DNA of 64,000 bases, taken from the IMG/VR virus record IMGVR_UViG_3300032315_001715, positions 186,001 through 250,000 of that record; one strand, written 5' to 3'. Positions 1,160-58,000 of this stretch are shown in pieces. Under the pieces are notes generated by a model, which was not told the DNA's origin, searched no databases, and worked only from the letters and a program-made list of their open reading frames with translations. Each line of letters opens with the position of its first letter. Positions within the stretch are counted from its first letter, which is position 1. Both the position numbers and the translations under genes were made by a program.

Positions 1160-2017
1160 ATGGCGGACCGCACACAGCAAGATCTCATCATTTCAGCATA
1201 TACCAACTATGATTGGTCAAAACTAAAGTATTGGGCAAACAGCATCGATCGATGCGGGTTTACCGGGGATAAGGTCATGATCGTTTATAACAGCGATCCG
1301 GCAACAGTGCAAAAATTAGTTGATCTTGGATTTAAGATCTGGGCCTTTAATCGAGATTCAACTACCGGTAATTTTTTCTGGCCAACCGAACTAATCATAG
1401 TGGTGCAGAGATTTTACCATATGTGGTATTATCTAAATCAGCTTCCAGACGACCATTATCGATATGTCATTACCACCGATGCCAAGGATGTAGTATTCCA
1501 AACCAATCCGGTAAAATGGCTGGAAAACAATCTAGGCAACAAGGACATCGTGGCTAGCTGCGAAAGCATTCGCTACATGCACGAACCATGGGGCGATGAC
1601 AACCTAAATGGTAGCTATCCCATGGTACACCAACAGATGAGAAAAAATCCAATCTGGAATTGCGGAGTACAAGCAGGCCGACAGCGTGCTATCAAGGAGC
1701 TATGGCTACATATATGGTTAATGTGCAAGGCTGGCGGTAGGCCAAATCCTGACCAAGCCGCATATAACGTTCTTCTGGATACCAAAGCATGGAGCGAAAT
1801 AACCAAGTTCTCGATGAGCGAGGATGGGTGGGCTTGCCAGGCAGGTACCACCGTTGATCCAAAAAAGATCAATGATTATCGGTCACATCTGCTGGAAGCA
1901 GAACCAGTTTGGCACGACGGGCTTGCCAAGACCAGCCAGAATCATACACATTCCATCCTGCATCAGTGGGATCGCATACCAACATGGCTTCCGGATATTG
2001 AAAAGAGATATGGATAG
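1160..2017 (+). CDS. Putative GT-A-fold glycosyltransferase
   Basis: YVITTDAKDVVFQTNP DxxD-type motif and NCGV..G motif; first gene of the sugar cluster. Confidence 0.65.
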   Translation: MADRTQQDLIISAYTNYDWSKLKYWANSIDRCGFTGDKVMIVYNSDPATVQKLVDLGFKIWAFNRDSTTGNFFWPTELIIVVQRFYHMWYYLNQLPDDHYRYVITTDAKDVVFQTNPVKWLENNLGNKDIVASCESIRYMHEPWGDDNLNGSYPMVHQQMRKNPIWNCGVQAGRQRAIKELWLHIWLMCKAGGRPNPDQAAYNVLLDTKAWSEITKFSMSEDGWACQAGTTVDPKKINDYRSHLLEAEPVWHDGLAKTSQNHTHSILHQWDRIPTWLPDIEKRYG

Positions 2018-2020
2018 AAA

Positions 2021-3004
2021 ATGGAAACAAATCTACAACAGCTACACCTTGAACAAGAAACTGCCATCAAGACTCCAATACCCATGCCACAATATTTGGC
2101 CGGTAAAAGCATCGTAACCAGTTGTTATCGATCGGAGATTCCTGGTGCTTACATTTTATTAAGCGAGCTGCATCGCCTTGATTTCAACATTCCAATAGAG
2201 GTGTTTTATCGAGAAGGTGAGCTTAATCAAGATGAGATCAGCGAAATGCAAAAGATATCTCCGGGGCAGATAGTCTTTAAAAAGCTGCAAAGCCCTGCAA
2301 TGAATTTTGTTGATAGATGGGGTAACGTCAAGGGATGGAGCACCAAGGTGCTGGCGATATTTGAAAGCCAGTATGAGGAAAATCTATGGATTGATTGTGA
2401 TAATGTTCCGATACGTAACTGCATGGATCTATTCAGTGACACTGAATACCTGCAGAAAGGCTCCATGTTTTGGCGAGACGTGTACAGCATTGATCGTGCT
2501 GATCAATATTGGAGCGGCAGCGACATGTGGAAGATTTTTGATGTAGTGCCTAACGACGGCGAGCCATTTGAAAGCGGACAATTTCTCATCAACAAACCCA
2601 AGGTCTGGTTGCAGTTTTCGTTGATGCACTATTATACCACACGCAACGAAATCTATTATCAGTTCGGCGGAGACGCTGAGTGCTGGCGAATGGCATGGCA
2701 GCGTGTGTCGATATCCCAAAACGGTTATCATTCGAAATTCAACTATCATTCGAGCGATCAAGTTCCATATGGGCTAATGCCGTATGGTCCTTTCCACAAG
2801 GGTGTGCAAAATCCGTGGCACAAATACGGTGGCGGCAGCGTAATGGTACAGAGAGATCGCAAGGGTGACGAGCTGTTTAATCACCGTAATCTAAACAAGT
2901 GGCGATGGAAGGAAGAAAATCCGTTTAACCACGATGTACAAAACGAATTTTCCTACCATGCTATCATGCGACACATCAAATCCAAGTACGGAGTTACCAA
3001 TTAA
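2021..3004 (+). CDS. Mannosyltransferase-like protein (GT71, Mnn1/Mnn2-like)
   Basis: KVLAIFESQYEENLWIDCDN, GSMFWRD, FESGQFLINK and GDAECWRMAW match the K..A...S.FEEVL.LDADN / G..FWPD / ESGQ..I.K / GDKE.F..A pattern. Confidence 0.75.
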   Translation: METNLQQLHLEQETAIKTPIPMPQYLAGKSIVTSCYRSEIPGAYILLSELHRLDFNIPIEVFYREGELNQDEISEMQKISPGQIVFKKLQSPAMNFVDRWGNVKGWSTKVLAIFESQYEENLWIDCDNVPIRNCMDLFSDTEYLQKGSMFWRDVYSIDRADQYWSGSDMWKIFDVVPNDGEPFESGQFLINKPKVWLQFSLMHYYTTRNEIYYQFGGDAECWRMAWQRVSISQNGYHSKFNYHSSDQVPYGLMPYGPFHKGVQNPWHKYGGGSVMVQRDRKGDELFNHRNLNKWRWKEENPFNHDVQNEFSYHAIMRHIKSKYGVTN

Positions 3005-4203
3005 TGGTAGAGATGCTAAGCCGGTTTGTTTATCAGGAAGACTGGAAGGTTTCATATGATCCCGACCGAGAACCGCAAAAGGTGAAGAGAACGCCGGTAC
3101 GACCTAGGCATCTATGGGTATTTGATTTCGAGGAAAACTACGACTGGGATACCATATGGAATGACGCCGTGCAGATCAACAACGACACTGTGCTGTTGAT
3201 TGGTCCGCCGTTGTATGAACATGCTAACTGGTTGCAAACCAATCACCCTCTGTACCTAAAGAGTACCAACCGCACATTACCAATGGAAATACGGGAGCTC
3301 GACCGTACCTGCGTCACCATGGTGAAGGTCCCAGGAATCGTTGACGAGCTGTTTGTGGCAGGTGATCACGGCGAGAAAACCATCAAGGTCAATCAACCAT
3401 CGTTTGATTTTGCCGGAAAAAAGGTCATCGTCACCATCAGCAGGGATCACCCCATCGAGTGGCTGAAGCAGTGGATAGATTATCATCGGATGGTGCACAA
3501 TATTGACGGATTGTTACTTTATAACAATCGCAGCAAGATCTATACCTCGGCAGAACTTGAAGCAGCTATCAGTAGATCCGACATGATGATCAAGGTCGTC
3601 GACTACGACGTACCGTTTGGTTGCATGGGCGGAGGAGATTGGGAATGGCAAGGTAGGAGAGGAACATCCCTGCCGTGGGATAGCGATTTCTCCCAGTATG
3701 TCATGCTGGAACATGCCAAATGGAGATACTTACACTGTGCCGATTTGGTGATTAACGCCGATACCGACGAACTACTATACATAAAACACACCACGCTCGA
3801 CGGCATGTCAGAATATTGCAAGACCAGCTCAAACAGCGTGTGGCTTTACAAGGGCACATGGATAGAACCGGTTGATAGCCTCACCGGTGTTGTTGCTAGT
3901 GATTTATCATTTGACGATCGCAGGTTTGATCGTTACTGGCAAACCAATAATGCCAATCAACGAGGCATTGGTATCAAATGGATGCTTAATCCGCAACGCA
4001 ACATGAGCTACCAATGGCATCTGCATAAAACATTTGGACCACACATGATGACCGATGAGATCGGATTTGGCCACTATCTGGCCATGAATACATCGTGGAG
4101 CTGGCCTCGAGATGGATACCAAGGTGACAAATCAACGCTGGTAGATCATGCGGAAATGAAATCCCATCTGCTGAGATGGAATCCTAAATTTGGAGAAATG
4201 TAA
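3004..4203 (+). CDS. GT92/GT2-like glycosyltransferase
   Basis: WLKQWIDYHRMVHNIDGLLLYNN and a DTDE motif. Confidence 0.65.
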   Translation: MVEMLSRFVYQEDWKVSYDPDREPQKVKRTPVRPRHLWVFDFEENYDWDTIWNDAVQINNDTVLLIGPPLYEHANWLQTNHPLYLKSTNRTLPMEIRELDRTCVTMVKVPGIVDELFVAGDHGEKTIKVNQPSFDFAGKKVIVTISRDHPIEWLKQWIDYHRMVHNIDGLLLYNNRSKIYTSAELEAAISRSDMMIKVVDYDVPFGCMGGGDWEWQGRRGTSLPWDSDFSQYVMLEHAKWRYLHCADLVINADTDELLYIKHTTLDGMSEYCKTSSNSVWLYKGTWIEPVDSLTGVVASDLSFDDRRFDRYWQTNNANQRGIGIKWMLNPQRNMSYQWHLHKTFGPHMMTDEIGFGHYLAMNTSWSWPRDGYQGDKSTLVDHAEMKSHLLRWNPKFGEM

Positions 4204-21753: not shown

Positions 21754-24700
21754 TTACACGGTTGGGCCGCTCCTATAAATCGCAGTGGCGATCTTGTCCG
21801 AGTTAGAAGTCGCTTCGTCTCGGGTCTTATCAAGGACGTAATTAGCACGTTCCAATGCCGCTATCATCATGTTCATTCGAAGCAGGCTTTCGTCGTAGTA
21901 TTTTACCGTACGATTGTTAAGCTCCTCGGTCGTTAAGATCGGAGCAACGGTCTTAACCGTTTCGGTGGTCTCATTTTTCTTAAAGGATTCATTTATCAGG
22001 GAAGATATTGAGCCAAGATATGGGTCCGGATTTTTGAATGCCACACCGGTCATGTTCTCCATTGGATTCGATGATTGGCTAAATTCAGATCTTATTGAGT
22101 CAAGGGTGTTTTCAACACTGCGAATCTGCTGAAGATCAGCAGATATACCTGCTATTGAATTGTGCATCATTCCAAATCGTTGCACCATACCGGCTATGTA
22201 TGATTCACTTTCAAAGTCAACACGGATCTTTTCTAGATCAAGCATGATTGCTGCCAATGATGTTCGAACAAGTCCAAATCCATCCAACATCTTCGTCATG
22301 TCGATTGGATCAATTCGGATCTTTTCTAGATCAAGCTTGATTGCTGCCAATGATGTTCGAACAAGTCCAAATCCATCCAACATCTTCGTCATGTCGATGT
22401 CAATTGGGTCAACACGGATCTTTTCTAGATCAAGCATGATTGCTGCTAGTGATGTTTGAATCAATCCAAATCCATCAGCAATGGTTGTTAAATAAGATTC
22501 TTTAGCGATTTCTGATGTAATGGATCGCATAGTATCCAATGATTCAACGGTTTCGTAAAACCCTTCGGCATCATTGATGACTTCTTGCCAAGCCGACGAC
22601 ATTGTTGATACCGCCTCATAAACACCCTCAGCATCGTTGATAACTTCCTGCCAACCGGCATCCATCGACATTGGTCGCACAAGTGGATTAAAATCGTTGA
22701 TAATTTCTTGCTGATCAAAATTCATTGACATGGGTCTTGCAAGGGATTCGGCACCAAACGGTGACCCAAGCAACCCACCGGGGCTTGATACTGGATTGAT
22801 TTCAGACATTAACGATCTAATCGTTTCAATTGTTGATTGTAGACGTTCTCGACTTAGATCCGAATTGAGTATTGTACCAATGTTACCAAGAAGTGTTGCC
22901 ATTTGCCTAAGTCGATCAAAACTTTGTTCCGGTATCGTCATCAGCTGTTCGGTAGTTACTGCGCTAATCTGGCGTACCAACGATGATACAACATCTATTA
23001 ACGGTTGTACCTGTCGCGTGTTAATACCTCCCCTGAATATTTGGCCAATTCGGTCAAACATGTTACCAATCGTGTTGATCCGTGCCAGGTTTGCGTCGTT
23101 AAGCAGTGTCAACAGATCTGATATCTTATCCCTAAATTGTGTGATATTGGTTGAAGATTCGTCTAACGCTAGTCCGACACTGACCAATCTATCTAGTTTT
23201 GTCGCAGGATCAACCGTTATAAGTCGACCTAACCCTTCGCTGAGGCTTTGCAATATTCCTGGATTAAATCCTTCTAGAGCGCGTTTCATGGCTTCAATGC
23301 CACGAGCAGAACCTTCTAAGTTATTGCTAGAAATTTCGCTGAGGGCAGTGATTTGCCTCGTAGTAGCGTCAACGTTAGCGGTTCGCAGTTCCCTAAAAGA
23401 ATTGACCATGTTTGAAAGCTGGGTACCAACTGACGTAACAACCTGAGATACACCAGAGAATGCCGAATCAATTGCCTTTCCAACGCTGTTCACCAGCGCA
23501 GAAACTCCTTCAAATCCAGATCTAATTCCAGTACCAAAACTCTGTGCTGCTGATCCAACACTCCGCAATAGTTCGCCTGCTCCGGATAGTCCTTGGTTGA
23601 TTGCAGTACCAAAACTCTGTGCTGCTGATCCAACACTCCGCAATAGTTCGCCTGCTCCGGATAGTCCTTGGTTGATTGCAGTACCAATACCGGTAAGAAG
23701 TGCGCCTGCCCCGGATAGTCCATCCCTGATAAAGGTTCCAATATTTCCGATAACCGACCCAAAGCTTTGAACGATTGCCGCACCACCGACAAATACTTCT
23801 CGTATCATCTTACCAAGTGGTTCAAGTGCGGGCGCGGCTAATCTCAACGCACCGGCCAATCCAATTATTGCAGCGGTTATGATCGCTATGGCAGGAGCTG
23901 CTGCAACCACCGCTGCGCTAAAGGAGGCAGCAGCTGGTACCAATGCCCTAAGCGTACCGCCAAGTCCCCGAGCCGCTGCTGCTGTTCCTGCGCCCCTGGC
24001 GGCGCCTGCGGCCGCGCCGCCACCTCCCGCCGCAGCAGCGCCACCACCACTGCTAAGACCGCCGAGCCTACCTAATCCTCGTAATGCACCAAGACCGGTT
24101 CTGACCATTAACAATCCCATAAGTGCCACGGCTGCTGTGATAACCGCAGGCGCTGCTAGTATTCCGGCAGCCATTATCGCATATCCTGTACCGGCACCTC
24201 CGCCGAACATTCCGCCAAGACCTTTAGAAAACTCGTGAATGGATCCAAAATCAGGCAACATAGCCCTAATGGCGGTGCCAAATTCTCGAACGTCTTTCAT
24301 GAAATCGCTAAATCCGCCTTGGCCCTCTTCCTTGTCTAACCACTTGAAGAAGTCATCAAATGCCGTTGTTATTCTAGTGATTATGGATTCCATATTATTT
24401 TTTAGATAATCACCGAATCTAGTTATATACGGTCCGAGTTTTTCTCTAATGGTTGTTGATGCTGTTGTTAGAGATCGTCCAAACTGTCGCAGAATCGGAG
24501 CAAGGCCTCTTGCCACATCACCTAGCAGTGCTGTTACCGTGTTGCCAATTGAACTAATTCCGGCATTAAATTCATTGAATGCTTCTTGGCTCTCGGACAA
24601 GTTTCGCCGTTGGATATCCTCGGCTTCCCGTTCTTCGGTCGTGAGCAATGCTCGGCGTGCCTGCTCTTGTCTAAACGCTTCTGATCCCTGCTGCAAACCT

Positions 24701-25989
24701 CGAACGAAATTATAAAGCTCTGGTCTTGCTGCACGCAGGGCTTTCATTTGATCTTCTGTCATGTTAGCAAAGATAGCAGACATGCGTTCAGATGCCTGTT
24801 GCGCATCTAGGTTGCCGGATCTTAATCCGGCCGTAACATCCTCGAGAGATGTTGCAAATCCGGGGACAATTGACAGCAGCGGACGCATGGATTCACTGAT
24901 CAACGCAGGTCCGCCCATGAACATGCCTTCTATCATTTCTCCTAACTGTCCGGCACCTGCGGCGCCAAAAGTAGCGTTCAACGCCGCGGTTAAACCTCGA
25001 ACACTACCGGCACCTGCCGTGCCTGCTGCGCGCTGTAGTCCATACATTCTTGTGGTTCTTAACAATTCTGCGGTTGATTTTCTTAGCTCGTCTCGATTCC
25101 TACCAGTTGCTTGGCTCAGTTGATCGAAGTTTCTCACCGTATCCATCGTTCGACCGACGATCTGTTGATCAGTAAGACCCCGTATCTCACCGCTTTGGCG
25201 CATCATTTCGATGGTTTCTAGCGATGCGGTGGTCATTTCGCCCTGCGTCATTATGAAATCAGCACCGCGCCGAGACATCTGGCTCATCTGTCCAGCCAAT
25301 CTCTGCACACGTTGAGTACCAAGAGATGCGGTAACCGCACCAAAGTTACCCATGATACGGCTAAACGCACCGAGCCCTAAGCCAGCTTGCGTAGCAGCAT
25401 CTGCAAATGAATTAAACCCTCCCTCGGCTGGCCGTATGCCCTGTGCATATAATCCACGAGACATGTCGGTGGTGGTCTTGAGTGCGTCGATCAATCCTCC
25501 GGTAACCACGGTAAGTGTTGCAAACGCGCTGGTAACTATACCGAGACCTGTACCAAAGACGGGTACATTGTTTCGTAAAACCTGGCCAAATCTACCAATT
25601 CCTGCCCCGGCATCAGTTAGCGACCTGCTGAAATCAGTTGTATCAGATTGTCCAATTTTCATACCGGCTTGCATGTTGGTGAGAATTGACTTACCTTGCT
25701 TTGCCGCCGGCGGTAATTTATCATCACGATCGCGACTGCTGCCCCGTCGGCGATATTCATTGTTGGTTTGACGCGTTTGTTGATTGGTGTTTTGTATTTC
25801 CTTGGTCAGCTTGTCGATAGCAGCTTGGTCCAACCCACCTGACTTTGCCAGCTGACCGAGCAGTCTCAAACTGATGTTGGAATTTCTAAGGATGCTTTCA
25901 AGCGTGGTTTCCTTGGCCCACCCTAGGGTGCCCAGTTGGCGCAGTGCTTGATCGTCTATGTTTGTTATGCTGGAATCTTGATCTGCCAT
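21754..25989 (-). CDS. Tape-measure-like protein (1411 aa)
   Basis: Long A/G/Q-rich helical ORF with hydrophobic segments and internal repeats; divergent from the gp26-like gene. Confidence 0.75.
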   Translation of the reverse strand: MADQDSSITNIDDQALRQLGTLGWAKETTLESILRNSNISLRLLGQLAKSGGLDQAAIDKLTKEIQNTNQQTRQTNNEYRRRGSSRDRDDKLPPAAKQGKSILTNMQAGMKIGQSDTTDFSRSLTDAGAGIGRFGQVLRNNVPVFGTGLGIVTSAFATLTVVTGGLIDALKTTTDMSRGLYAQGIRPAEGGFNSFADAATQAGLGLGAFSRIMGNFGAVTASLGTQRVQRLAGQMSQMSRRGADFIMTQGEMTTASLETIEMMRQSGEIRGLTDQQIVGRTMDTVRNFDQLSQATGRNRDELRKSTAELLRTTRMYGLQRAAGTAGAGSVRGLTAALNATFGAAGAGQLGEMIEGMFMGGPALISESMRPLLSIVPGFATSLEDVTAGLRSGNLDAQQASERMSAIFANMTEDQMKALRAARPELYNFVRGLQQGSEAFRQEQARRALLTTEEREAEDIQRRNLSESQEAFNEFNAGISSIGNTVTALLGDVARGLAPILRQFGRSLTTASTTIREKLGPYITRFGDYLKNNMESIITRITTAFDDFFKWLDKEEGQGGFSDFMKDVREFGTAIRAMLPDFGSIHEFSKGLGGMFGGGAGTGYAIMAAGILAAPAVITAAVALMGLLMVRTGLGALRGLGRLGGLSSGGGAAAAGGGGAAAGAARGAGTAAAARGLGGTLRALVPAAASFSAAVVAAAPAIAIITAAIIGLAGALRLAAPALEPLGKMIREVFVGGAAIVQSFGSVIGNIGTFIRDGLSGAGALLTGIGTAINQGLSGAGELLRSVGSAAQSFGTAINQGLSGAGELLRSVGSAAQSFGTGIRSGFEGVSALVNSVGKAIDSAFSGVSQVVTSVGTQLSNMVNSFRELRTANVDATTRQITALSEISSNNLEGSARGIEAMKRALEGFNPGILQSLSEGLGRLITVDPATKLDRLVSVGLALDESSTNITQFRDKISDLLTLLNDANLARINTIGNMFDRIGQIFRGGINTRQVQPLIDVVSSLVRQISAVTTEQLMTIPEQSFDRLRQMATLLGNIGTILNSDLSRERLQSTIETIRSLMSEINPVSSPGGLLGSPFGAESLARPMSMNFDQQEIINDFNPLVRPMSMDAGWQEVINDAEGVYEAVSTMSSAWQEVINDAEGFYETVESLDTMRSITSEIAKESYLTTIADGFGLIQTSLAAIMLDLEKIRVDPIDIDMTKMLDGFGLVRTSLAAIKLDLEKIRIDPIDMTKMLDGFGLVRTSLAAIMLDLEKIRVDFESESYIAGMVQRFGMMHNSIAGISADLQQIRSVENTLDSIRSEFSQSSNPMENMTGVAFKNPDPYLGSISSLINESFKKNETTETVKTVAPILTTEELNNRTVKYYDESLLRMNMMIAALERANYVLDKTRDEATSNSDKIATAIYRSGPTV
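22217..22474. repeat. Three near-identical 93/99-bp in-frame repeats in the tape-measure gene
   Basis: CGGATCTTTTCTAGATCAAGC recurs at 22223, 22316 and 22415 (LAAIMLDLEKIRVD.. units). Confidence 0.9.
23529..23687. repeat. Exact 75-bp tandem duplication in the tape-measure gene
   Basis: CAGTACCAA unit starts at 23529, 23604 and 23679; encodes GTAINQGLSGAGELLRSVGSAAQSF twice. Confidence 0.92.
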
Positions 25990-26029
25990 ATTTCTTACCG
26001 CATTGATGGAAATATACCCGGTTAATCCT

Positions 26030-26037
26030 GGTAAATA
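26030..26037 (+). promoter_or_regulatory. Late promoter
   Basis: GGTAAATA upstream of the gp26-like gene. Confidence 0.5.
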
Positions 26038-26067
26038 CCCATGACTTCTATTTATGGGACCAAAACC

Positions 26068-26922
26068 ATGTCATCAAATCCACTCAAGAGATACTTTCGC
26101 CAACCGTCACTGTATGTGAGACTACCAAGCCGAGGGCTTTGGTACAAGAACGGTGAGGTTAGCATGACCGAGGACAATGAAGTAGCCGTGTATCCCATGG
26201 CTGCCATCGACGACATCATGCTCAACACTCCAGATGCCATGCTCAACGGACAAGCGCTGGAAAAGGTTGTTACCAGCTGCGTGCCAGACGTGAAGAACGT
26301 CAAGCGATTAACCCTGCCGGACCTCGAAGCCATTTTTGTCGGCATCAAGTCAGCTACCAACAACGGCAAGGTCGAATACGATCGCAAGTGCCCAAGCTGC
26401 TCACACGAAAACACCTTTGATTTAAACTGCCAAGCCTTGCTTGACAACACATCCTTTGTTGACGACGGTGATCTTGCCATGAAGTTCAATGACGATCTCA
26501 TCGTGCATGTGAAGCCGTATGATTTTGAAATGCGCCAGCTGTTCATCAAGCGAGAGTTTGAGGAAGAACGCGCCATGCGTGCGTTAGAAATGTCCAATCA
26601 GGAAATGGACGACATCACCAAGGCCGCGGTGCTGGGTGAAAGCGTTGATCGTCTCAGCCACATCACCTTTGAGCTAGTAAGCCGCAGCATTGAAAAGATT
26701 GAATTGATCAAGGAAGGCGCTACAGTAACTGATCGAGCACATATCAGTGAATGGTTGATGGGTATCAGCAAGCAACAAGCCGATTTGGTCATCGAGGCGG
26801 TAAACAAGCTCAATGCCGTGGGAGTTACCAAGAAGGTGCCAGTGGTTTGCGAAAGCTGTGGTAACCAGTGGGAGGATGCGCTGAGCTTTGACCCAACAAG
26901 TTTTTTCGCCAAACGCTCCTAA
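26068..26922 (+). CDS. gp26: Baseplate hub assembly protein/tail assembly chaperone (gp26-like)
   Basis: NPLKRYFRQP.LYVRLPS.G, M...D...L.TPD...NG, CPSCSHEN, C..CG...E..L.FDPTSFF. Start could also be 26041. Confidence 0.85.
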   Translation: MSSNPLKRYFRQPSLYVRLPSRGLWYKNGEVSMTEDNEVAVYPMAAIDDIMLNTPDAMLNGQALEKVVTSCVPDVKNVKRLTLPDLEAIFVGIKSATNNGKVEYDRKCPSCSHENTFDLNCQALLDNTSFVDDGDLAMKFNDDLIVHVKPYDFEMRQLFIKREFEEERAMRALEMSNQEMDDITKAAVLGESVDRLSHITFELVSRSIEKIELIKEGATVTDRAHISEWLMGISKQQADLVIEAVNKLNAVGVTKKVPVVCESCGNQWEDALSFDPTSFFAKRS

Positions 26923-26948
26923 CCGGTGATCCAGATCTCATTGTTGAG

Positions 26949-27143
26949 ATGATCAACACGATGGAGCGCAATCGAAAGGCCATAACCAAGGATCTTTCCA
27001 CATTGGTTTTCTACATGCAGGGCGGGCTTAGTTTCGAGGACAGCCATTTGTTGTCTGCTGATCAGCGATCAGCCATGTCAAAGGTCATTGAGAAACACTA
27101 CGAAGCGGCAAGCGGCAAGAGCAACAGCAAGCTAATTGGGTGA
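26949..27143 (+). CDS. gp51-like small hub assembly protein; probably also made as the -1 frameshift extension of gp26
   Basis: YMQGGLSFEDSH.LS..QR pattern; the frame is open back through the slippery site at 26901-26907; weak RBS. Confidence 0.65.
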   Translation: MINTMERNRKAITKDLSTLVFYMQGGLSFEDSHLLSADQRSAMSKVIEKHYEAASGKSNSKLIG

Positions 27144-27620
27144 TGGGCTAACGCCCATCAGTTGTGTGTTTCTTTCGATTCGCAAGCTCATCTCTTTCAA
27201 CACACAACGCATTTATCTACGTCTGATTCTGATAGATTTGAAGCCATTCTTCTCCCCTTGCGGGGAGAGGATTGGTCCGCTTCTGATGAGTCGTCGGCCA
27301 TGCTGCAATCACCCTTGGTTCTGATCAACCAGCTGGCGGAACGCCTATTTCCAGCTTGCGGGTGCTACTCTCGGGACCATCAGTCCCACGTTCGGTTATG
27401 GATTTTCTCCAAGCCGCGAGGCTACCATGCAGGGGCAGGCCACGCGTCACGGGGGTGTTGTCACACGGATCCCGTGATCCTTTTCGCGATTTTTCTGGCG
27501 GGAGCTGTCAGCAGATCTCCCGTGGTGAGTTTGATAACCTCGCCGTTATCCTTTCACCAGGTGGCAACACCACCATGATTGGGCCAGTATGTGATCAGTA
27601 TAGTCTAGATGATATGTTGT
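27141..27620. ncRNA. Candidate large structured non-coding RNA (strand unresolved, minus favoured)
   Basis: Dense stems with no credible ORF: TGATGGGC/GCCCATCA, GTTGTGTGTT/AACACACAAC, TCTCCCC/GGGGAGA, AGCTGG/CCAGCT, GGGAC/GTCCC, TCACGGG/CCCGTGA, CGGGAG/CTCCCG, GATAAC/GTTATC, GGTG/CACC. Confidence 0.55.
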
Positions 27621-27623
27621 ATT

Positions 27624-28047
27624 TTAGATGGTGGGGAGATTTTCATGAGCCTGTATGAGTGCGTTTGTGAGCCTGGTTTTTGGTTCTAGTGAGCTTGGTT
27701 GTTTCATTAAGTGTGGACTTGTTAGGGTCCATAGAATTTGACGACGTTCGGTCGACAAACCATTGTATGTCTCATTTACGATGAGATCAAATTCTCTTCG
27801 GTAATTAAAACACAATGCAGCGTCAATGGTCGAAAATCTTGATTGGCATGATCTCGATCGTTGCTGTGGTCGTGGTATTGATTGTTTCATGGATTTTGGG
27901 AAAAATCTCAAGCTTTATAGACCTTCTATTGGTGTTTTTACATACTAGTCTTGTGAACGTCCTGAGCCAACGTTCCGTTATAACTGAGCCGAGTGCAACA
28001 GGGCAGGTTTTATACCTGCCCTGTTTTTTATCTCCGCTTTCGCTCAT
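27624..28047 (-). pseudogene. Two overlapping short ORFs (28047-27823 and 27911-27624), possibly one frame-disrupted gene
   Basis: The ORFs overlap by ~90 nt in frames offset by +1; both look protein-like, but no family was recognised. Confidence 0.3.
27997..28029 (+). terminator. 12-bp hairpin with a plus-strand T-tract
   Basis: AACAGGGCAGGT-TTTAT-ACCTGCCCTGTT followed by TTTT; sits at the stop codon of the TnpB-like gene. Confidence 0.7.
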
Positions 28048-48600: not shown

Positions 48601-49004
48601 ATCAGATGGTATGGCATCCGGTTAGATACAAGGTTCTGTTTGGTAGCCAAGCAGAACAGGAACTGCAAGCCAAGTTCAAGGTCGTTAAAACACCCGGTAC
48701 CACGGTAACCGACAACGAGGTGAAAAGCCTGGTCATTGCTGCGGTAAATGATTATTTTAGCCTGTCCAACTGGGATTTTGGCCAAAGTTTCTACTTTACT
48801 GAGCTTGCGGCTTATATACATCAGAGATTGGCTACCATAGTTGGTTCGGTGGTGATCACTCCCTTGAATGCACAGGCAAAATTTGGAGATCTTTTTGAAA
48901 TCACCTGTAATGCTGATGAGGTTTTCATCAGCAGCGCACGAGTGACCGATGTTCAGATAGTACCAGCACTAACAGAAACGGTTCTAGGAATAACAAATGG
49001 TTGA
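45624..49004 (+). CDS. gp6: Baseplate wedge protein gp6-like
   Basis: DFETIR, DF.D.IESSE...L.DLLAY, NFLDTA.RRESV..LA, I.F.DG.FG, RMV..EDY. Confidence 0.88.
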   Translation: MATTQQVRQSQLFAGEDWRVIYTAFTQVNFNAYDFETIRSAMVDYVRLNYPEDFNDWIESSEFVALIDLLAYLGQSLAFRMDLNTRENFLDTATRRESVFRLARMLSYQPQRSIPASGLLKITTTITNQSIYDSYGNNLQNVQIIWNDQNNADWFEQFILVINATLNATNTFGDPAKSGIVQGVPTELYQMNNTSIPTGVVPFTASVAGNNLSMELANVSFDEGSITNLANSGSFYEIDPDPLNSWSIVYRNDGNGYSSPNSGFFLYFKQGNMQFKDYQCSLPVPNRVIDVNADGVNQTDVWVQNIDTTGLVNKKWKKVPAINGYNVIYNSLDKGERDIFSVISRDNNGNDQVSIRFADGNFGNVPIGVIRVWYRTSNNLTYQIRPSDISNQTFAFSYVDNLNNVWNVAFTTNLSYTVNNAQGTESNFRIAQNAPQIYYTQDRMVNGEDYNLFPLQDGRVLKNKAVNRIYSGQSRYLDVTDPTGSYNDLNVFGTDGILYSENDLNMRDVVTSPGINYTVVVNTQIQPLLNGSLGNQTQALELKNFYYYNYPRVAIPAGYTWKTITSLTKSTTGAFFDQSTAVPLGSYASTQSAWHYVSQGSLMKFSSGKQASVVGIIGNGTGVGLTGKLVTNQGAVTLSNLINTGDIPVSVIAAFRTTLTTSEVSNIASALGTKQTFGIRYDSGDMVWKIISPDNLSSSDTFSLDFAGDTSSMNKDASWLVKVIWTGSGWRIYTRSMRYIFESVRQNRFYFENTKKVYDPNTSSAKLDYISVLSINPDPITGLALGKDYQWQITGQQIYPDGYADPRSVRLTMWEGNNFGIPDDPEEFNEIVDPSVSPEKMVFWQRITSSDGYQYWQPIDIPISRIYLNPSLIPPTNSTNPAWKEGDIAYVISTQSFFRYSKSMLYNVTNEYRMRIGRKNISFLWKHYAPSEQRINPAVMNLIDMYVLTSAYNTDVRNWIATNGSTTTIPQPPTSADLKADFIDLEAYKQMTDQMVWHPVRYKVLFGSQAEQELQAKFKVVKTPGTTVTDNEVKSLVIAAVNDYFSLSNWDFGQSFYFTELAAYIHQRLATIVGSVVITPLNAQAKFGDLFEITCNADEVFISSARVTDVQIVPALTETVLGITNG

Positions 49005-52000
49005 TAAGCGTCGAACTATTGAGCTCCTTCCAGGGCATCTACGTACTGAAACACTTACCAAGGTATTTGCGGCCACGGTTGATCATCTTTTTCAACCGGA
49101 AAGTGTTGAGTTTTTAACCGGGTATGTTGGTAATAGACCAGCATGGTACGATCCAGTTAAGGATTTTTACATCGGTGAGCCTACCAAGAATCGCGCGGAT
49201 TATCAATTTTCACCGACGATCGTTAGCAAGGATTACCAGAGCGGATTGCTGACCAATGCATTGTTTTACGAGGATCTACTGGGTCAGTTGCGATTTCAAG
49301 GCGCACTGGTTGATAATCATAATCGATTGTTTGAACAGGAATACTACTCGTGGAGTCCTCCGATAGATGCTGATAAGTTTGTTAACTTTTATAACTACTA
49401 TTGGTTACCATACGGCCCGGCGGCAATTGAATTGCTAGACACAACTGATCTTCTAAATGATGTGGTTGATGCCCTTAACTACACTTATACCGGAACGATA
49501 AAGTACGAGTCGACCGGCGAAGTGGTCGAGACTACATTACCGTTTACCACTGGAATGAAAATCGTACCTCGGGCAGATCGAACTGATTCGATCAATGGTC
49601 GAGAATTTATCATTGAGCTTGTTGGTCAAGGGATACAGCTTGTTGAGATATTTTCACTGGCAAACCCAGGATGGGATTTAACTTCGTGGGATACGTCCAG
49701 CTGGGGCGGAGACGATTCACTTGAATACAAGCAATACATAACCATCAATCGAGCTAGCAAGGATGGAAATCAATGGAGTTCGACCAATAGATGGTTCCAC
49801 GTTGATGTTATCAAGTTCAGCAAGGAAGTCAATCCAGATCCGTATCAACAACAAGCCCGTCGCCCTATCATTGAGTTTGACAGCAACATCAATTTGTACA
49901 AGTACGGTTTTCGAAACCAAGGATCGGTGGATCTTGTTGATACTACCAATGGCGATTTCCTGGGATCTATCGTTGGGCAGCCATCGTGGTCTATCGACGG
50001 TGTTCCTCTGCGCGACGGTATGCGAGTGTTGCCACTGGCCGATGAAAATCTCAATACCAACGGAAAGATATATGAGGTATCGGGACAGATCGCCGGGGCA
50101 ATTGAGCTCACTGTTGTTCAATTGAATGGCGATCAAAACGGATCTCCGATGTACGGTGATCGAGTTAACGTTAAGTTTGGCGCCCTACAGGGATATAATC
50201 TCTATTATGATGGAATGAATTGGTCGTCATCTGGCCAGCAAAAACAGGGCACGACGATACCTCCGTTATTCATACTGTATGACATCAACGGCAATGCAAT
50301 GGACGATCCTAGCATTTATCCGTCGAGCACATTTGCTGGCAGCCATGTGTTTGGATATACGTTGGATCAGAATTCATCCTTCGATTCGGAGCTTGGGATT
50401 AATGCCAAGCTCGACCAGTTCGGTGATTATGTTTTTATCAACAATTTAGCATCAGACACCGTAAACTACATCAGCGATAATCGCCAGCAGACCTATAGCG
50501 GTTATCTGTTTGCCGGTATCGGCGACGATCAGTTTTCGAACTCGTGGTATTCTGCCCCCACATCAAGCAGGCAATACATCGTTAACGAATTTGTTGTAAC
50601 CAGAAATCAAGCTGAATATCGCATCGATCAGACCCCGGCTGTGCAGATACCAAATACCCTGCCGACCATAATGGTATATTCAATAACGCCAAATGGCACC
50701 CAAACTGAACTGAGAAACGGCAGTGACTACTTGGTTAGTGGAAATATAGTATCGATAATTTCGTCGATCATACCAGGATCAAGATTGATAGTTAAAAGCT
50801 GGAACAGCACCGCACCGTCAGAACTAATTGGATATTACGAAATTCCGCTCAATTTACGCGCAAATCCGAACAACGATGAAATCGTGTCAACCACTCGTAG
50901 CCAATTTTTGCAACAGTTCATCGATATTATCAGCAACCAAACAGGTCTTACCGGCACAACTCTTGGTAGCAACAACTATCGAGATACTGCAAAAAATCGT
51001 GGGCTAGGTCTGTCGATATTACAACACCGTGCTCCGATGATCAAGCTTGCTCTGATGAACACCATTCGTATCAACGATGCAACATCAACACAAGGGCCAG
51101 CCGATCCGATAGCAGCGATGCAGTTTGCACAGAGATCGTATCAAAGATTTTACAATCGATTCCTGCAAGCGTTGTTTAGCCAGTCGACTAAGCAGGGATT
51201 CTCAGCGTCCTCCTCTGGATCGTGCGATCCTTATGTGGTCGCACAATGGGTCTCTTCCGCCCTGGCACAAATCAATGTTGGGAAGACCCAAGCAAGCCCG
51301 TGGGCTAATAGTGGTCCAGATGGTATGCCCGGATCATATTGCTCGATGAAAAGCTCGTCTCCGACCTATGTTCCGGCATCGCCTGCTCGATTGGGACTAA
51401 CTCCGGTTTATCAGCCGGTTGTTTATCTAGACTCGTGGACCTATACAGATACTAGATTGGTGATACAAACACACGACGGTGCGCGCATCGTCATGGTGAA
51501 CGATCAAGGTGAACAGCTAGGTACGTTTGTTCATGGACAAACCTCGACGACAAATCCAGAAGAATTGACCAACCCGGTTGCAGCAGCATGGTTGAAATTT
51601 GAGCTAGATTTGTACAACGGGCTTCCAACCGGATATCGAGATCCAGACGCTGCACTGGTATTTGATACCAGGGAATACATGCCAGGAAAATGGCGCTCTA
51701 GCGACTACAGCCGCAGTGAGACCTTGCGGCTCCAACGATCATTCTTTGATAAATGGACGATCAACGGCCAGATCGAGTTTAGGGCGAATACAGGATACGA
51801 TACAACCAATCAATTTTCTTACAACTATCGAAGTGTTCTCGATCTCAATGGCCAAGCGGTGCCTGGTCATTGGCAAGGGATCTATCGATGGTTTTACGAT
51901 ACTGATCGACCAAATACACATCCATGGGAAATGCTCGGGTTTACCCAAAAGCCGGCTTGGTGGGATGCACAGTACGGGTCGTCTCCGTACACTCGAGGTA

Positions 52001-55000
52001 ACACTGCATTGTGGGAAGATCTTCGAGATGGCATCATCAGGCAAGGCGCACGTGCCGGTCAACATCAAGCATGGGCTCGCCCAGGTCTGATGAGTTCAAT
52101 ACCAGTTGATGATCAAGGAAATCTACTGCCTCCTTATGCAGCTGGTTGTGTGGCATCTATACCAGATGTGTATTCGTCTAGATCTGAATGGATATTTGGT
52201 GATGGCTCACCGGTTGAGAGCGCATGGACATATTCTCAGGACTATTCCTTTGTAATCTCTCAGGTTAGCTATCTCATGAAGCCGGCTCGATTCGTTGAAT
52301 ACACCTGGGATTCACTGCGAACCGTTGACTCGTTCGCTAATACATCAAGTTCACAATGGCTGTACATTGATACCAATTCTCGCCGCGGTAGCAATGAGTT
52401 TTATGTACACAGGGAGAAACCAAACACCCTGTCGATAGGTGTTACCATACCAAACGAAAGCGATCTTTCTTATTTTGGTAGCTGTGGATTCCAGCACTGG
52501 ATATCCGAATACCTTGTTAGCCAAGGATTAGATGTTACTAACTATTTTGGTAATCTCATCAGGGGAGGTAACGTACAGCTTGCCCAACGAATGGCAGGCT
52601 ACATCAACAGCAATAGCCTTAGAGTAACCGTGGACAGTTTTGGAGATCTTGGATACAATAGCCAGATAGTTCCAAATGAAAACATCAATACATACCTCTA
52701 CAAAAGCACCAGCATCGGAGAAAGCATCTATAGCGGCGTGGTCGTCGAGCAGGTAAAGAACGGATGGCGGGTTTACGGATATGATCCGGTTGGTCAGATC
52801 TTCACCATCATACCTAGCAATACCAATGGTGCAAAAAATTCAATAGTGATTGGTAATCAAAAGGCAATCGAATACAAGATTGGATTACCAACAACATCCT
52901 ACGTGCCATACGGTAAGGTGTTTTCCACTAGGCAAGATGTTTACGACTTTTTGATCAGCTATGGTAGATGGTTGACTGATCAAGGGTGGGTCTTTGATCA
53001 ATACAGCGAAGATGCAAACGTTGTATTGAACTGGAGCCAAAGCGCCAAGGAATTTTTGTTTTGGAGCCAAGGTTCCTGGGACAACGGTACGTTTATTACA
53101 CTGAGTCCAAGTGCTGACAGCGTAAGATTTTTTCAGCAATATGGTAATATACAATATGTTAACGGGATAACGGCAGGGACCTATCCGATCGTGGACAGGG
53201 CTGGATCTCCGGTACAACCTCAAAACGTTACGATTATCAGGGATGAGGGTGCTATTACCGTTAAACCAAATAACTCTCAGGGAATCTACGGTCTTCGACT
53301 TTATAGAACAACGCTCGAACATGCGGTATTTTTTGATAACATCACGGCCTTTGGAGATATAGTATATCAGCCTTTGTATAATCTCAGGCAGGAACGTGTT
53401 AAGATATATGCATACAGGACCAATGATTGGAATGGGCGAGTTGATGCTCCCGGGTATTTCCTGACCCAGAATGCCAACACGGGTACGTGGAGCATGACAA
53501 CCAATCTTGAAACCACGGCTAATGATGTACGCAAGTATTTCAACATTGACCAACCGAAGAATTATAACGAAATTAATCCGATAAATGGTGCGATCGTACA
53601 AAAGACCACCGAACTCGGTGTGGTCGATCGAACCGATATCAGAAATCTTGCAAAGCATCTGATCGGTTATCAGGATCGGGTTTACATGCAAAATCTCTTG
53701 CTAGAGGATGCCACGCAGTTTGAGTTTTATCAGGGATTCATTAGGCAAAAAGGTACCAGAAGCACCATTGATAGGCTGCTTCGCAATACCTCGATAATAC
53801 CGGCTGACAGTTCTTTTAATTACTATGAGGAATGGTTGATACGTACCGGATGGTATGGTGCAACCAGCCTTAACAACGTCATTGAATACAGATTACCACA
53901 GGCAAAGGTCGTCAACGATCCGCAGTGGATTAGGCTGTTTAGTACCAGTGACAGTGACTACAGCGGTGATCAGGTTCTTGACATAGTGCCTGGCGATCCG
54001 TTGATAGTAACACCTCCTGAAAGTTATCAAGATCGCCTATTTGCGCTGAGAACCAGCTATGCTATTAATCCACAAACTGATCTACCAACCGCCGGCTATG
54101 CCATGCTTGGTGAGACCACTTGGTTTGTAACAAACACAGCCGGATTGTTTAGTTTGTATTCTGATAGGCGCTCACAACTAATACCGCTGCAAGAACGCGA
54201 CACGGTATGGCAATTTATCAACAATACCGGAGGCTGGAACGCTTGGATATTAACCAAGGCGGTAAGCCAAATTGATATCACCATACCTAGCCAGGTTAAT
54301 GACACGCCTACTATCATTACAACCATTGCTGAGCACGGATTGCTTGATGGTGATATAGTAGTCATATATGGCGTTTTTGGATTAGCAATACTAAATGGTA
54401 CCTATGTGATCAGCGGTGTGACGCCAAAGACCTTTCAGATACCAGTTACTACCTTTGAACAGGGTATAGGCGGAACGATATTAGTTTATCGACCAATGAG
54501 ATTTGCCACGATATTTGATCGAGATAGCGGCGAGCCACCAGGAGGTTGGATGGACGGCGACATCGTTTATGTCGACGAGGGAGGAATCGTTCCAGGAGCA
54601 TGGACGGTCTACACAAGAAGCTTTAATAAGTGGTATCCATATCGGCAACAGGAATACCGAGTGGCAGCTAGCCAGATGGTTGAATCTCGGTTGTATGATT
54701 CTGATAGCAAGGCACTGATTTCGTTGGTTGGATACCATGATCCGATACAGGGTCGTATTTCTGGTAAGGCTGATGCTGAAATCAGCTACAAGACTGATTT
54801 CGATCCGGCCAAGTATAACAAAGGAAATTCAAGTGGCTACGCACTAAGCGAAAGCGAGGCATGGAGCAGCGCCCAGCTCGGCGAGGTGTGGTGGGATCTT
54901 TCAACGGCGAGGTATATTGATTATGGCATCGGAGATGAACAATACAGGATACAACATTGGGGAAAGATCGCCCCTGGAACAAGTGTTGACGTGTATGAAT

Positions 55001-58000
55001 GGATACGAAGCCCTATACCGCCTTCAGATTGGGCTAGTTATGCTGCGCAAGGCGAAAGCATCTCAGATGGAAGCAGAACTTTTATCCCTACAGGAAGTAT
55101 CAGAAATCCTACAAATCCGAGCTGGTCAGAGATAGTCGAATACGGCTCCGGTGGTTCTGCGACGACATATTACTATTTCTGGGTAAAAAATAGCTCGATG
55201 GCACCCTGGTCTCCCACGAGGAAACTAACGACCATAAACATTTCGACCCTAATACAAAATCCAGATTCTGACGATATGCCGTGGTATGCTGCTGTGAGCA
55301 GCCGAAGCATTGTGATGGGTAATGTTCAGCGGCTGTTGAATGCTAATCGTCTCATACATCAGATAACGTACTCGTCAACTCCGAACGAAAACAACACGTT
55401 TGGCGAGTGGGAACTGATACGCGAAGGCGATCCAATGAGCCCCATTAACGATACAGCATGGGGTAAGCTGAAAAGCAGCCTAACAACCATTGACGGTCTA
55501 AACAACGATGTACCGGATTACCATCTTCCGGAAATGCAAAAATACGGTACGATGGTACGTCCTCGCCAGACCTGGTTTGAAAACAGGGAAGCTGCTAGCA
55601 AGGTGTTTGTTAACGCATTTAACACGCTTATAAGCATAAGCTTGACTCCAATGGTCGACAACCCTGCGATGACCGGTTGGAAGATCTATTTTGAGGCGGC
55701 GGAACCAATTCCGCCCCAAGCCGGCAACTGGGACTATCGTGTTACGGATCTTGGGCAGCGGGATGCACTAATTGGTGCTATATTGCCGGGGCAAGTGGTA
55801 TTAGTGGACCCGGTGTCTGCTACCGGTAATCTATGGACCATGTGGGTGTATCAACCCGGATCGTCGCCTTGGACGATGATTAGGAAACAAGCATATAACA
55901 CCAACAACTACTGGAATTATGTCGATTGGTATCTAGTTGGATATGGTCCAAATACCAACATTAACTACACCGTAGCAACCATTGGTGAACTAAGCACGAT
56001 AGACAACCCATCTGTCGGAAAGACCGTCCGTGTGCTTGACAACGGCAGCAACAAATGGCAGATCTTCGCATGGAACGGCGAATGGCGATTGGTTGGTCAA
56101 CAAGACGGCAGTATCGAGGTTCTTTCCCAGATCTATACATGGGCAGAAACACTTGGTGGATTTGATGATCTTGCGTTTGATAGCACCATGTTTGATCCAA
56201 CTGCTTCTATTGAGTTTGGTAATGTTATTGATGGTATCACGAATGCCATTTATCCCGAGCCAGATTCAATTGAGATGAATAGCTTGTTCTTCTCGATGCT
56301 CAGCTACGTTGTATCAGAACAAGGACAGGTTGATTGGTTGGTTAAGACCAGTAACATTGTCCTAAAAGGATTTGATCAATCTCTCACAACATCAAAGCTT
56401 CTGGCCGCTGACAACATTAACAGCATTATTGGGTTCGTTAACGAGGCTAAACCGTACCATTCCAAGGTCAGGGAGTTTGTTTCTGGCAAGAAATCGGATG
56501 ATCTAGCAAGCCTCAATATCATTGACTTTGATTACCCACCCGGACTTCCATATGATGTAATACCAGACGAAGGAACCGTTGAACGTATCTACTACGATAC
56601 CTACCAGTCTTGGGCCAATAATTATCTGACCAATCCGGAATTGGTTAGAAAGCTTACTACCACATTGATTTTCGATAGGATCAGCACGCCAAGTCTTAGG
56701 AAAGGCTGGGGTCGCATTTGGGCGGTGTTTGGTTGGGACGACAGCTATGGACAGAATTTTGGTGCCATAGATCGCATCGACGAATATTACGAACCAACAC
56801 CTGGTATGATACCGAAGATCATTGAAGATCTAATGGGCGGTGTTACGTATAAAGGTTACCGCTTAAATGCTCTTGGATTTAATGTGGAAACTGGCTGGGG
56901 TATTGGACCTTGGGGAGGTCTCCTTGGATGGGATCCAGATCCTCTTGCGGTTGAAAGCTATCTTGATCAAATCATACAGGGTGGAGATGCACCGACATAC
57001 GACGTTGGTGTAGGCAATGGTATCACTCGTAACTTCCCCATCGTTCGAGATGTTACTAACCCACACAACATAGTTGTTTGGAGTGACGGAAGCCTTCGGA
57101 CCTACGGAATTGACTGGATCGTACCGACATACGCGCAGAGCGCAACGGTTGTTGACGGCGGCAGTGGTTATTCGATTGGTGACCAGCTTGACCTAATTGC
57201 AGGTAACGGCATAGCTGCTGCTAGGCTGCGAGTAACAGCGGTTGATCATGGTATGATTACCGCTGTTGAAATAGTTGGACGAGGTTCATATTCAACGGTT
57301 CTTAGAGGACCGTATTTGGCACAGTATCCTTTTGCATATCCGGGTACTGGTAGCAATGCACAGTTCGGTGTTAATTGGTTTTGTAATAACATTGAGTTTG
57401 CCACAGCACCAGACAGCAGCAGTGTTGCTAATATATTCATGTTGTATGTCGGTACGACATTTGGTCCGGCTCCAGAAGGCAGCAGTGACACGATATATGA
57501 CGGTAATGAATTCATACAACCATTCGTTGATGACAATCATCCGGAAGAACTCTATCCGTTCCGTGCAAGAGATGCCGTCATGATGGATGTCATGACCAGG
57601 CGCGCTGGCGGCCAGCCATTGATAAACGTCGGGGTTTACACAACTGACGGTATAACTGACCAATATGACCTATCAATCGTACCCCAGGATGACGATGCGG
57701 TCATGGCATATCTAGACGGGCAACCGTTGGTTGCCGGGTTAGCCGGTGATTTTGTGATCAACTATGATACCAGACGAATGGTGTTCCTATCAACTCCGCT
57801 GAGCGATAAGATCTTGCATGTTTTTGTCATCGGTACCGGCGGTAGCAGCAGGCTTGCGGGCGAAGCGTATGTAGCATCTCCGGGAATCGGTTATCTACCA
57901 GGAGACGTTGTAACGCTTGACAGCGAGATTGGACAGGTACCAGCTAGCGTGCAGATATCAACCGTAACCGCGGTATCGATCTCGATAACATCGCCTGGCA

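Follow-up and report, generated by a model that had tools for sequence, protein, structure and literature searches.

The gp26-like baseplate-hub gene of a 453-kb freshwater jumbo phage very probably encodes two proteins, a slippery T_TTT_TTC site at its 3' end allowing some ribosomes to slip back one base and to add a gp51-like tail of about 80 residues. The same design recurs in every relative examined that has a single gp26-family gene, whereas phage T4 makes the two forms from two separate genes. The DNA analyzed here, called the window, is a stretch of 64,000 nucleotides corresponding to bases 186001-250000 of a 452,799-bp viral genome (IMGVR_UViG_3300032315_001715) assembled from freshwater metagenomes and estimated complete.

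ORF 26041..26922 (+) matches the Pfam family T4_baseplate (PF12322, E 1e-16, 61.7 bits for a cut-off of 24.5) and phrog_150, annotated as baseplate hub (E 6e-19), and the FF and CxxC at its C-terminal end are invariant in the alignment with T4 gp26. It is the only PF12322 gene in the genome. Homologues begin with MSxNPL and mostly start at the position of ATG 26068, and residues 1-9 have a pLDDT below 50 in an AlphaFold model of mean pLDDT 87, so 26068 is the likelier start, giving a product of 284 aa. On the opposite strand, with start codons 52 nt apart, lies a 1411-aa gene (21754..25989, -) that hits three tail length tape measure families (phrog_1272, phrog_58 and phrog_4200) and is followed by the portal gene. 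A large divergent gene is found at this position in RaK2, GAP32, 121Q, Munch, MIJ3, Phosso, SCTP-2 and RsoM2USA; that of RaK2 is noted as tape-measure-like and two others are labelled structural or virion proteins. A DNA search of positions 25500-28000 against phage records found nothing.

The gp26-like ORF ends with AGT TTT TTC, four sense codons (AKRS) and TAA. T_TTT_TTC (26901-26907) is therefore in X_XXY_YYZ register, on the wobble base of Ser287 and on Phe288-Phe289. The -1 frame has a TGA at 26889-91 and is then open from 26892 to the TGA at 27141-43, reading FFRQTLLTGDPDLIVEM..., so that the extension (26901..27143, +) consists of FF plus 78 codons plus TGA. The predicted transframe product is 367 aa long from ATG 26041 or 358 aa from ATG 26068, with ...DPTSFFRQTLLTGDPD... 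at the junction. After a 6-nt spacer (26908..26913), a two-tier stem-loop (26914..26968) is the probable frameshift stimulator: the minimum-energy fold of 26908-26990 pairs CGCUCC (26914-19) with GGAGCG (26963-68) around an inner AUCUCA-UUGU-UGAGAU hairpin, with an energy of -23.2 kcal/mol and a z-score of -2.9 against shuffles. The first ATG of the -1 ORF (26949..26951, codon 17 of the extension), which is the start used by gene callers, is enclosed in the 3' half of this structure and has no good Shine-Dalgarno sequence. A terminator-like hairpin with an 8-bp stem, five G-C pairs and a T-rich tail (27141..27160) overlaps the stop of the -1 ORF. The heptamer, its distance to the stop, the open -1 frame, the stem and the fusion length of about 358 aa had all been pointed out in the initial annotation, and every one of these sequence statements holds.

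Conservation of the heptamer and of the -1 overlap, proposed beforehand as a test, was then examined in relatives. By tblastn the -1 peptide finds jumbo phages, and in every case the match begins before the stop of the hub gene. We read the junction in 13 isolates (Atu_ph07, Phosso, MIJ3, Xoo-sp13, RAS14, RaK2, 121Q, GAP32, Munch, XacN1, RsoM2USA, SCTP-2 and Turkey5), whose gp26 is only 23-32% identical to that of the window. All have T_TTT_TTC or T_TTT_TTT on the same Phe-Phe, a -1 frame open for 72-84 codons and a closed +1 frame. The codon before the FF is AGT, CAT, GCT, CGT, AAT, GTT or GAT, and thus always ends in T, although in the window AGT makes up 9.7% of Ser codons (TTT represents 64.5% of Phe codons). 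In metagenomes, a search with the single protein found only two viral contigs and no metagenome locus, while an alignment of close homologues retrieved 37 loci that contain the junction, all 37 with the heptamer (35 with a final C, 2 with T). Four further metagenome loci (L016, L035, L037 and L038) have it too, and a fifth (L036) has A_AAT_TTT three bases upstream; there the 0 frame reads NFS and only the shifted product restores NFF. Altogether, the 56 junctions read (13 isolates, 42 metagenome relatives and the window) all keep a shift-prone motif and a 72-84-codon -1 ORF, the motif being T_TTT_TTY in 55 of them. These heptamers belong to the H_HH.U_UU.Y class, which is among the most efficient in E. 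coli (PMC4066793). As a control, T4 gp26 keeps the FF but encodes it as TTC TTT and has no -1 ORF, indicating that amino-acid conservation alone does not give the heptamer.

Several results indicate that the long product is what is conserved. From the FF onward, the -1 peptides align almost without gaps (one single-residue insertion in 15 sequences) with the pattern FFRxxLLxxxPxxI, I14 being invariant, while the 0-frame tails are 1-11 unrelated residues. No independent start is conserved: the first ATG, GTG or TTG of the -1 ORF falls at codon 4, 5, 15, 17, 21, 33 or 50 in different phages (codon 33 in RaK2, codon 50 in RsoM2USA), and there is none in the 75 codons of the MIJ3/PA5oct-type extension. 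Stops in the -1 frame lie 0-5 codons upstream of the heptamer in most of the relatives. In 32 relatives of the window, the stretch between the 0-frame stop and ATG 26949 varies most at the third codon position of the -1 frame (entropy 1.11/0.97/1.64, P 0.002), a pattern identical to that seen after the ATG. Downstream structure is also enriched, since the 70 nt downstream are more stable than control windows from the same genes (-17.0 vs -10.4 kcal/mol, P 2e-13), and across 49 distinct relatives the first helix of 4 bp or more mostly starts at +6 to +9. L016, 68% identical, keeps the architecture with a compensatory change in the inner hairpin (z -3.8). However, there is no single consensus fold: only subsets of relatives share helices and show compensatory changes, and the structure is weak or absent in the RaK2 group (z -0.6 to +1.4).

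In addition, one natural relative, P0016 (331 aa, locus L034), encodes core and tail in a single frame (AAT TTT CGG) without a heptamer. It is colinear with a profile of the conceptual fusions over positions 38-347 of 352 (198 bits), and it follows a tail-less paralogue and a large divergent gene. A search for further in-frame fusions with the tail of P0016 found only P0016 itself, and a mixed core-plus-tail alignment for this protein was visibly misaligned and was set aside.

We next asked how the extension relates to T4 gp51. T4 gp26 and gp51 both match T4_baseplate and phrog_150; gp26 ends two residues after the profile, whereas gp51 is a T4_baseplate core (residues 1-201) carrying 48 more residues, annotated in its homologues as Gp51_C (PF28602), that begin right after the [FV]F. 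The window's 0-frame product likewise ends just after the invariant FF, as gp26 does, and its transframe product would have the architecture of gp51, except that core and tail are not in one continuous frame, a situation found only in T4-type gp51 and in P0016. The genome of the window, four jumbo isolates (Atu_ph07, RaK2, MIJ3 and XacN1), S-PM2, P-SSM2, KVP40, phiM12 and Vi01 each have one PF12322 gene, while T4 has two, divergent from each other. In S-PM2, P-SSM2, KVP40 and phiM12 the gp26 gene ends with the same heptamer on FF, and the -1 ORF aligns without gaps to the T4 gp51 tail (YxIN...YSL...MxPxER). In the first three, this ORF is the annotated "gp51 baseplate hub assembly catalyst", treated in public records as an independent gene of 55-57 aa that starts at an ATG 4-6 codons after the FF. 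Vi01 has a T_TTC tetramer variant.

Unlike the tails of the cyanophages and KVP40, which are clearly T4-like, the tail of the window is of a jumbo type, about 20 residues longer than the T4 tail and only weakly similar to it in sequence, so its link to Gp51_C is less certain. Local hhalign comparison of jumbo-type with T4-type tails gave P 2e-4 to 9e-4 with a probability of 22-46%, the full-length global comparison was colinear with a probability of 93%, and a direct profile comparison with the single T4 gp51 sequence was insignificant (probability 1.5%). Scans of single sequences found nothing: Pfam (in a copy without the PF28602 model) and PHROGs gave no family above noise for the extension peptides, apart from a RaK2-group PHROG of unknown function. 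Forty of the 100 ESM Atlas clusters nearest to the window's tail are in the set carrying Gp51_C (score 0.92, 184 of 256 features). A single-sequence AlphaFold model of the extension was of low confidence (pLDDT 67) and was left out of the fold search. Because the gene, the codon pair, the frame and the position are all the same, we treat the tails as the same element.

We therefore propose, with high but not full confidence, that the gene is decoded in two ways. Most ribosomes would read through Phe288-Phe289, add AKRS and stop, giving a short protein equivalent to T4 gp26. A fraction would pause over the stem-loop, their tRNAs would slip back one base on U_UUU_UUC, and 78 more codons would be read in the -1 frame, giving a long protein of 358-367 aa, equivalent to T4 gp51, made of the gp26 core and a predicted all-helical Gp51_C-like tail. 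By homology with T4 gp26 and gp51, both listed as hub-assembly chaperones with gp51 absent from particles (PMC3004832), both forms would act during assembly of the central hub and tape measure and would not be kept in the virion. In agreement with this, the hub protein was not found in XacN1 or RaK2 virions (PMC5852040) and carries no mass spectrometry flag in PA5oct. What our analysis establishes is the signal and its conservation, the conserved coding of the -1 ORF from the slip site onward, the lack of a conserved start, the natural in-frame fusion and the one-gene versus two-gene pattern; that slipping occurs on the ribosome and yields the long protein, how often it does so, and what the two forms do or bind are inferred.

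Other explanations were considered. The small ORF could be translated on its own, from ATG 26949 or by stop-start coupling, as a free gp51-like peptide, the heptamer being a by-product of the conserved Phe-Phe. Gene callers and public records do annotate such small ORFs, an ATG lies 4-6 codons after the FF in Atu_ph07, Phosso, 121Q, Turkey5, the cyanophages, KVP40 and phiM12, sometimes in an ATGA stop-start overlap, so that a free small gp51 could also be made there, and in some metagenome relatives an ATG 11 codons upstream opens the -1 frame. However, this seems unlikely as the sole explanation, since RsoM2USA and RaK2 would lose 49 and 32 residues of the conserved domain and MIJ3/PA5oct-type phages have no start at all, residues 3-16 of the extension are conserved and constrained although they precede the window's ATG, the wobble T and the TTT choice are conserved, and T4 gp51 and P0016 carry the tail covalently on a gp26-like core.

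It is also possible, but unlikely, that the fusion is made at the RNA level, RNA polymerase slipping on the T6-T7 run to insert one U or drop two, since transcriptional slippage is an alternative route to the same kind of product in bacteria and mobile elements (reviewed in PMC5009743). Yet the run is short, with only 5 T in L036 and only ATTTTC in Vi01, all variants fall in the tRNA re-pairing classes X_XXY_YYZ or Z_ZZN, and polymerase slippage has no use for a stable stem-loop enriched at the canonical 6-9 nt spacing. Finally, a homopolymer sequencing or assembly error, or a recent mutation splitting one gp51-like gene, could be suspected in a metagenome-derived genome, all the more since an in-frame version exists in P0016. 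This is in practice refuted, because the same frame relation is found in 56 of 56 junctions, including complete isolate genomes sequenced by many laboratories, with the 0-frame stop following within 1-11 codons everywhere, and because an independently assembled contig from another study, about 91% identical, crosses the site without any indel. Judged from sequence signals and conservation, a programmed -1 frameshift fusing gp26 to the downstream ORF is the only reading that fits all relatives.

The initial annotation further interpreted gp26 and gp51 as a G/GT-type chaperone pair head-to-head with the tape-measure gene, and this interpretation is only partly supported. The frameshift, the gp51-like nature of the downstream ORF and the head-to-head position next to a tape-measure-like gene are supported, but a G/GT-type pair is not supported as stated. 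In lambda G/GT, P2 E/E+E' and Mu, a -1 frameshift on an X_XXY_YYZ heptamer close to the 3' end of a tail-assembly gene next to the tape-measure gene yields a minor C-terminally extended isoform sharing its N-terminal body with the major form, and the proteins are absent from virions; sequence signals and conservation suggest that design here. In contrast, Pfam and PHROGs give only baseplate-hub families and no tail-assembly-chaperone (TAC) family, and the body is a ~285-aa protein, predicted to be a zinc-ribbon-containing alpha/beta fold, instead of a ~140-aa TAC. No member of the family has a solved structure, and the confident model of the core has no Foldseek match at E below 0.4 and only generic helical-hairpin matches with VIA-align (Z of 7.9 or less). 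Moreover, the gene is divergent from the tape-measure gene rather than on the same strand between the tube and tape-measure genes, and in T4 genes 26 and 51 are divergent paralogues, not tandem neighbours. The resemblance to G/GT is thus an analogy of design, namely two C-terminal isoforms of a tail-assembly factor. In the G/GT type the short form binds the tape measure and the extension binds the tube protein, whereas any such binding here would be by analogy only. The site also recalls the dnaX tau/gamma and IS3/IS911 cassettes, with a bacterial-type heptamer and a downstream stem-loop at 6-9 nt, U_UU.U_UU.C being used by some IS elements (PMC4066793). However, no upstream Shine-Dalgarno-like stimulator is evident here (GGGAGGA lies about 26 nt upstream), and the frameshift would lengthen the product whereas in dnaX it shortens it.

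Frameshift cassettes of this design are known, but we found no report of a gp26/gp51 frameshift in literature searches, which did not cover subscription journals, and none of the roughly 25 public records examined annotates a slippage, several of them leaving the 200-250 bases after gp26 empty. A broader reading, which we hold to be somewhat more likely than not, is that the -1 frameshift at the gp26 Phe-Phe is ancestral to the whole T4-like superfamily (jumbo RaK2/Atu_ph07/PA5oct/XacN1-like phages, cyanophages, KVP40-like phages, phiM12-like phages and Ackermannviridae) and is their counterpart of the conserved G/GT tail-assembly frameshift. In this view, gp51 would not be a separate gene in most of these phages but the transframe isoform of gp26, T4 and its close relatives would be the derived state in which duplication fixed the two isoforms as two genes, and the low frameshift frequency would explain why gp51 acts "catalytically" in hub assembly.

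The finding would add a new, widely conserved recoding site to phage biology, in a gene family (T4_baseplate, gp26 and gp51) whose roles in T4 hub assembly have stayed unclear for decades. On this reading, it explains why most T4-like and RaK2-like genomes seem to have only a fragment of gene 51, or no gene 51 at all, and it corrects the annotation of dozens of reference genomes. The ratio of two isoforms set by one heptamer would also give a direct experimental handle on how the central hub and tape measure are assembled in contractile-tail phages, including marine cyanophages and therapeutic jumbo phages.

Regarding the 5' end of the gene, the gp26 ORF probably starts at ATG 26068 and not at 26041 (window 26041-26070), since most of the 120 homologues listed begin with MSxNPL or a near variant, as judged from a sample of these sequences, and residues 1-9 have a pLDDT below 50. 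At the other end of the protein, a single one of the 120 close homologues, the metagenome relative P0201, ends with ...SYFGKRS instead of ...SFF..., a change which, inferred from the protein sequence alone, would break the heptamer. We also observed that the bases located just after the heptamer (GGCAAACGCTC; window 26908-26918, columns 8-18 of alignment A4) are conserved beyond what the -1 codons need. For example, the third base of ACG is kept in at least 90% of 32 relatives. This conservation may reflect dual coding with the 0-frame GKRS tail, although another explanation could be an RNA-level constraint in the spacer and the 5' arm of the stem. Among the 19 Phe-Phe dicodons in the long ORFs of the window, one other besides that of gp26 is written T_TTT_TTC in frame.

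About 650 bases following the terminator-like hairpin (window 27160-27810) have no convincing ORF and carry two more terminator-like hairpins (27464-27488). Further along the window, a single ORF of 3676 aa is found at 48997-60027 (+), preceded by ORFs of 1126 aa and 1211 aa, and such giant genes are typical of jumbo phages.

Locus L034 (NCBI GCA_902386595.1, contig CABMJN010000146, positions 1988-3996) contains two tandem genes of the gp26 family, one without the tail and one with the tail in frame. These genes are carried by a 23-kb contig whose protein is labelled 'uncultured archaeon'; it looks like a phage contig binned into a genome assembly. In Ackermannviridae, as seen at the gp26 3' end of Salmonella phage Vi01, the sequence is GAA ATT TTC ATT TAA. 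This provides only a T_TTC tetramer, but a gp51-like -1 ORF (…YSIFEISESMPWH…) opens exactly at this position. Finally, we examined the public records of MIJ3, Ettore, PA5oct, RaK2 and RsoM2USA, which leave the roughly 190-240 bases after the hub gene unannotated, and the -1 extension accounts for most or all of that gap.
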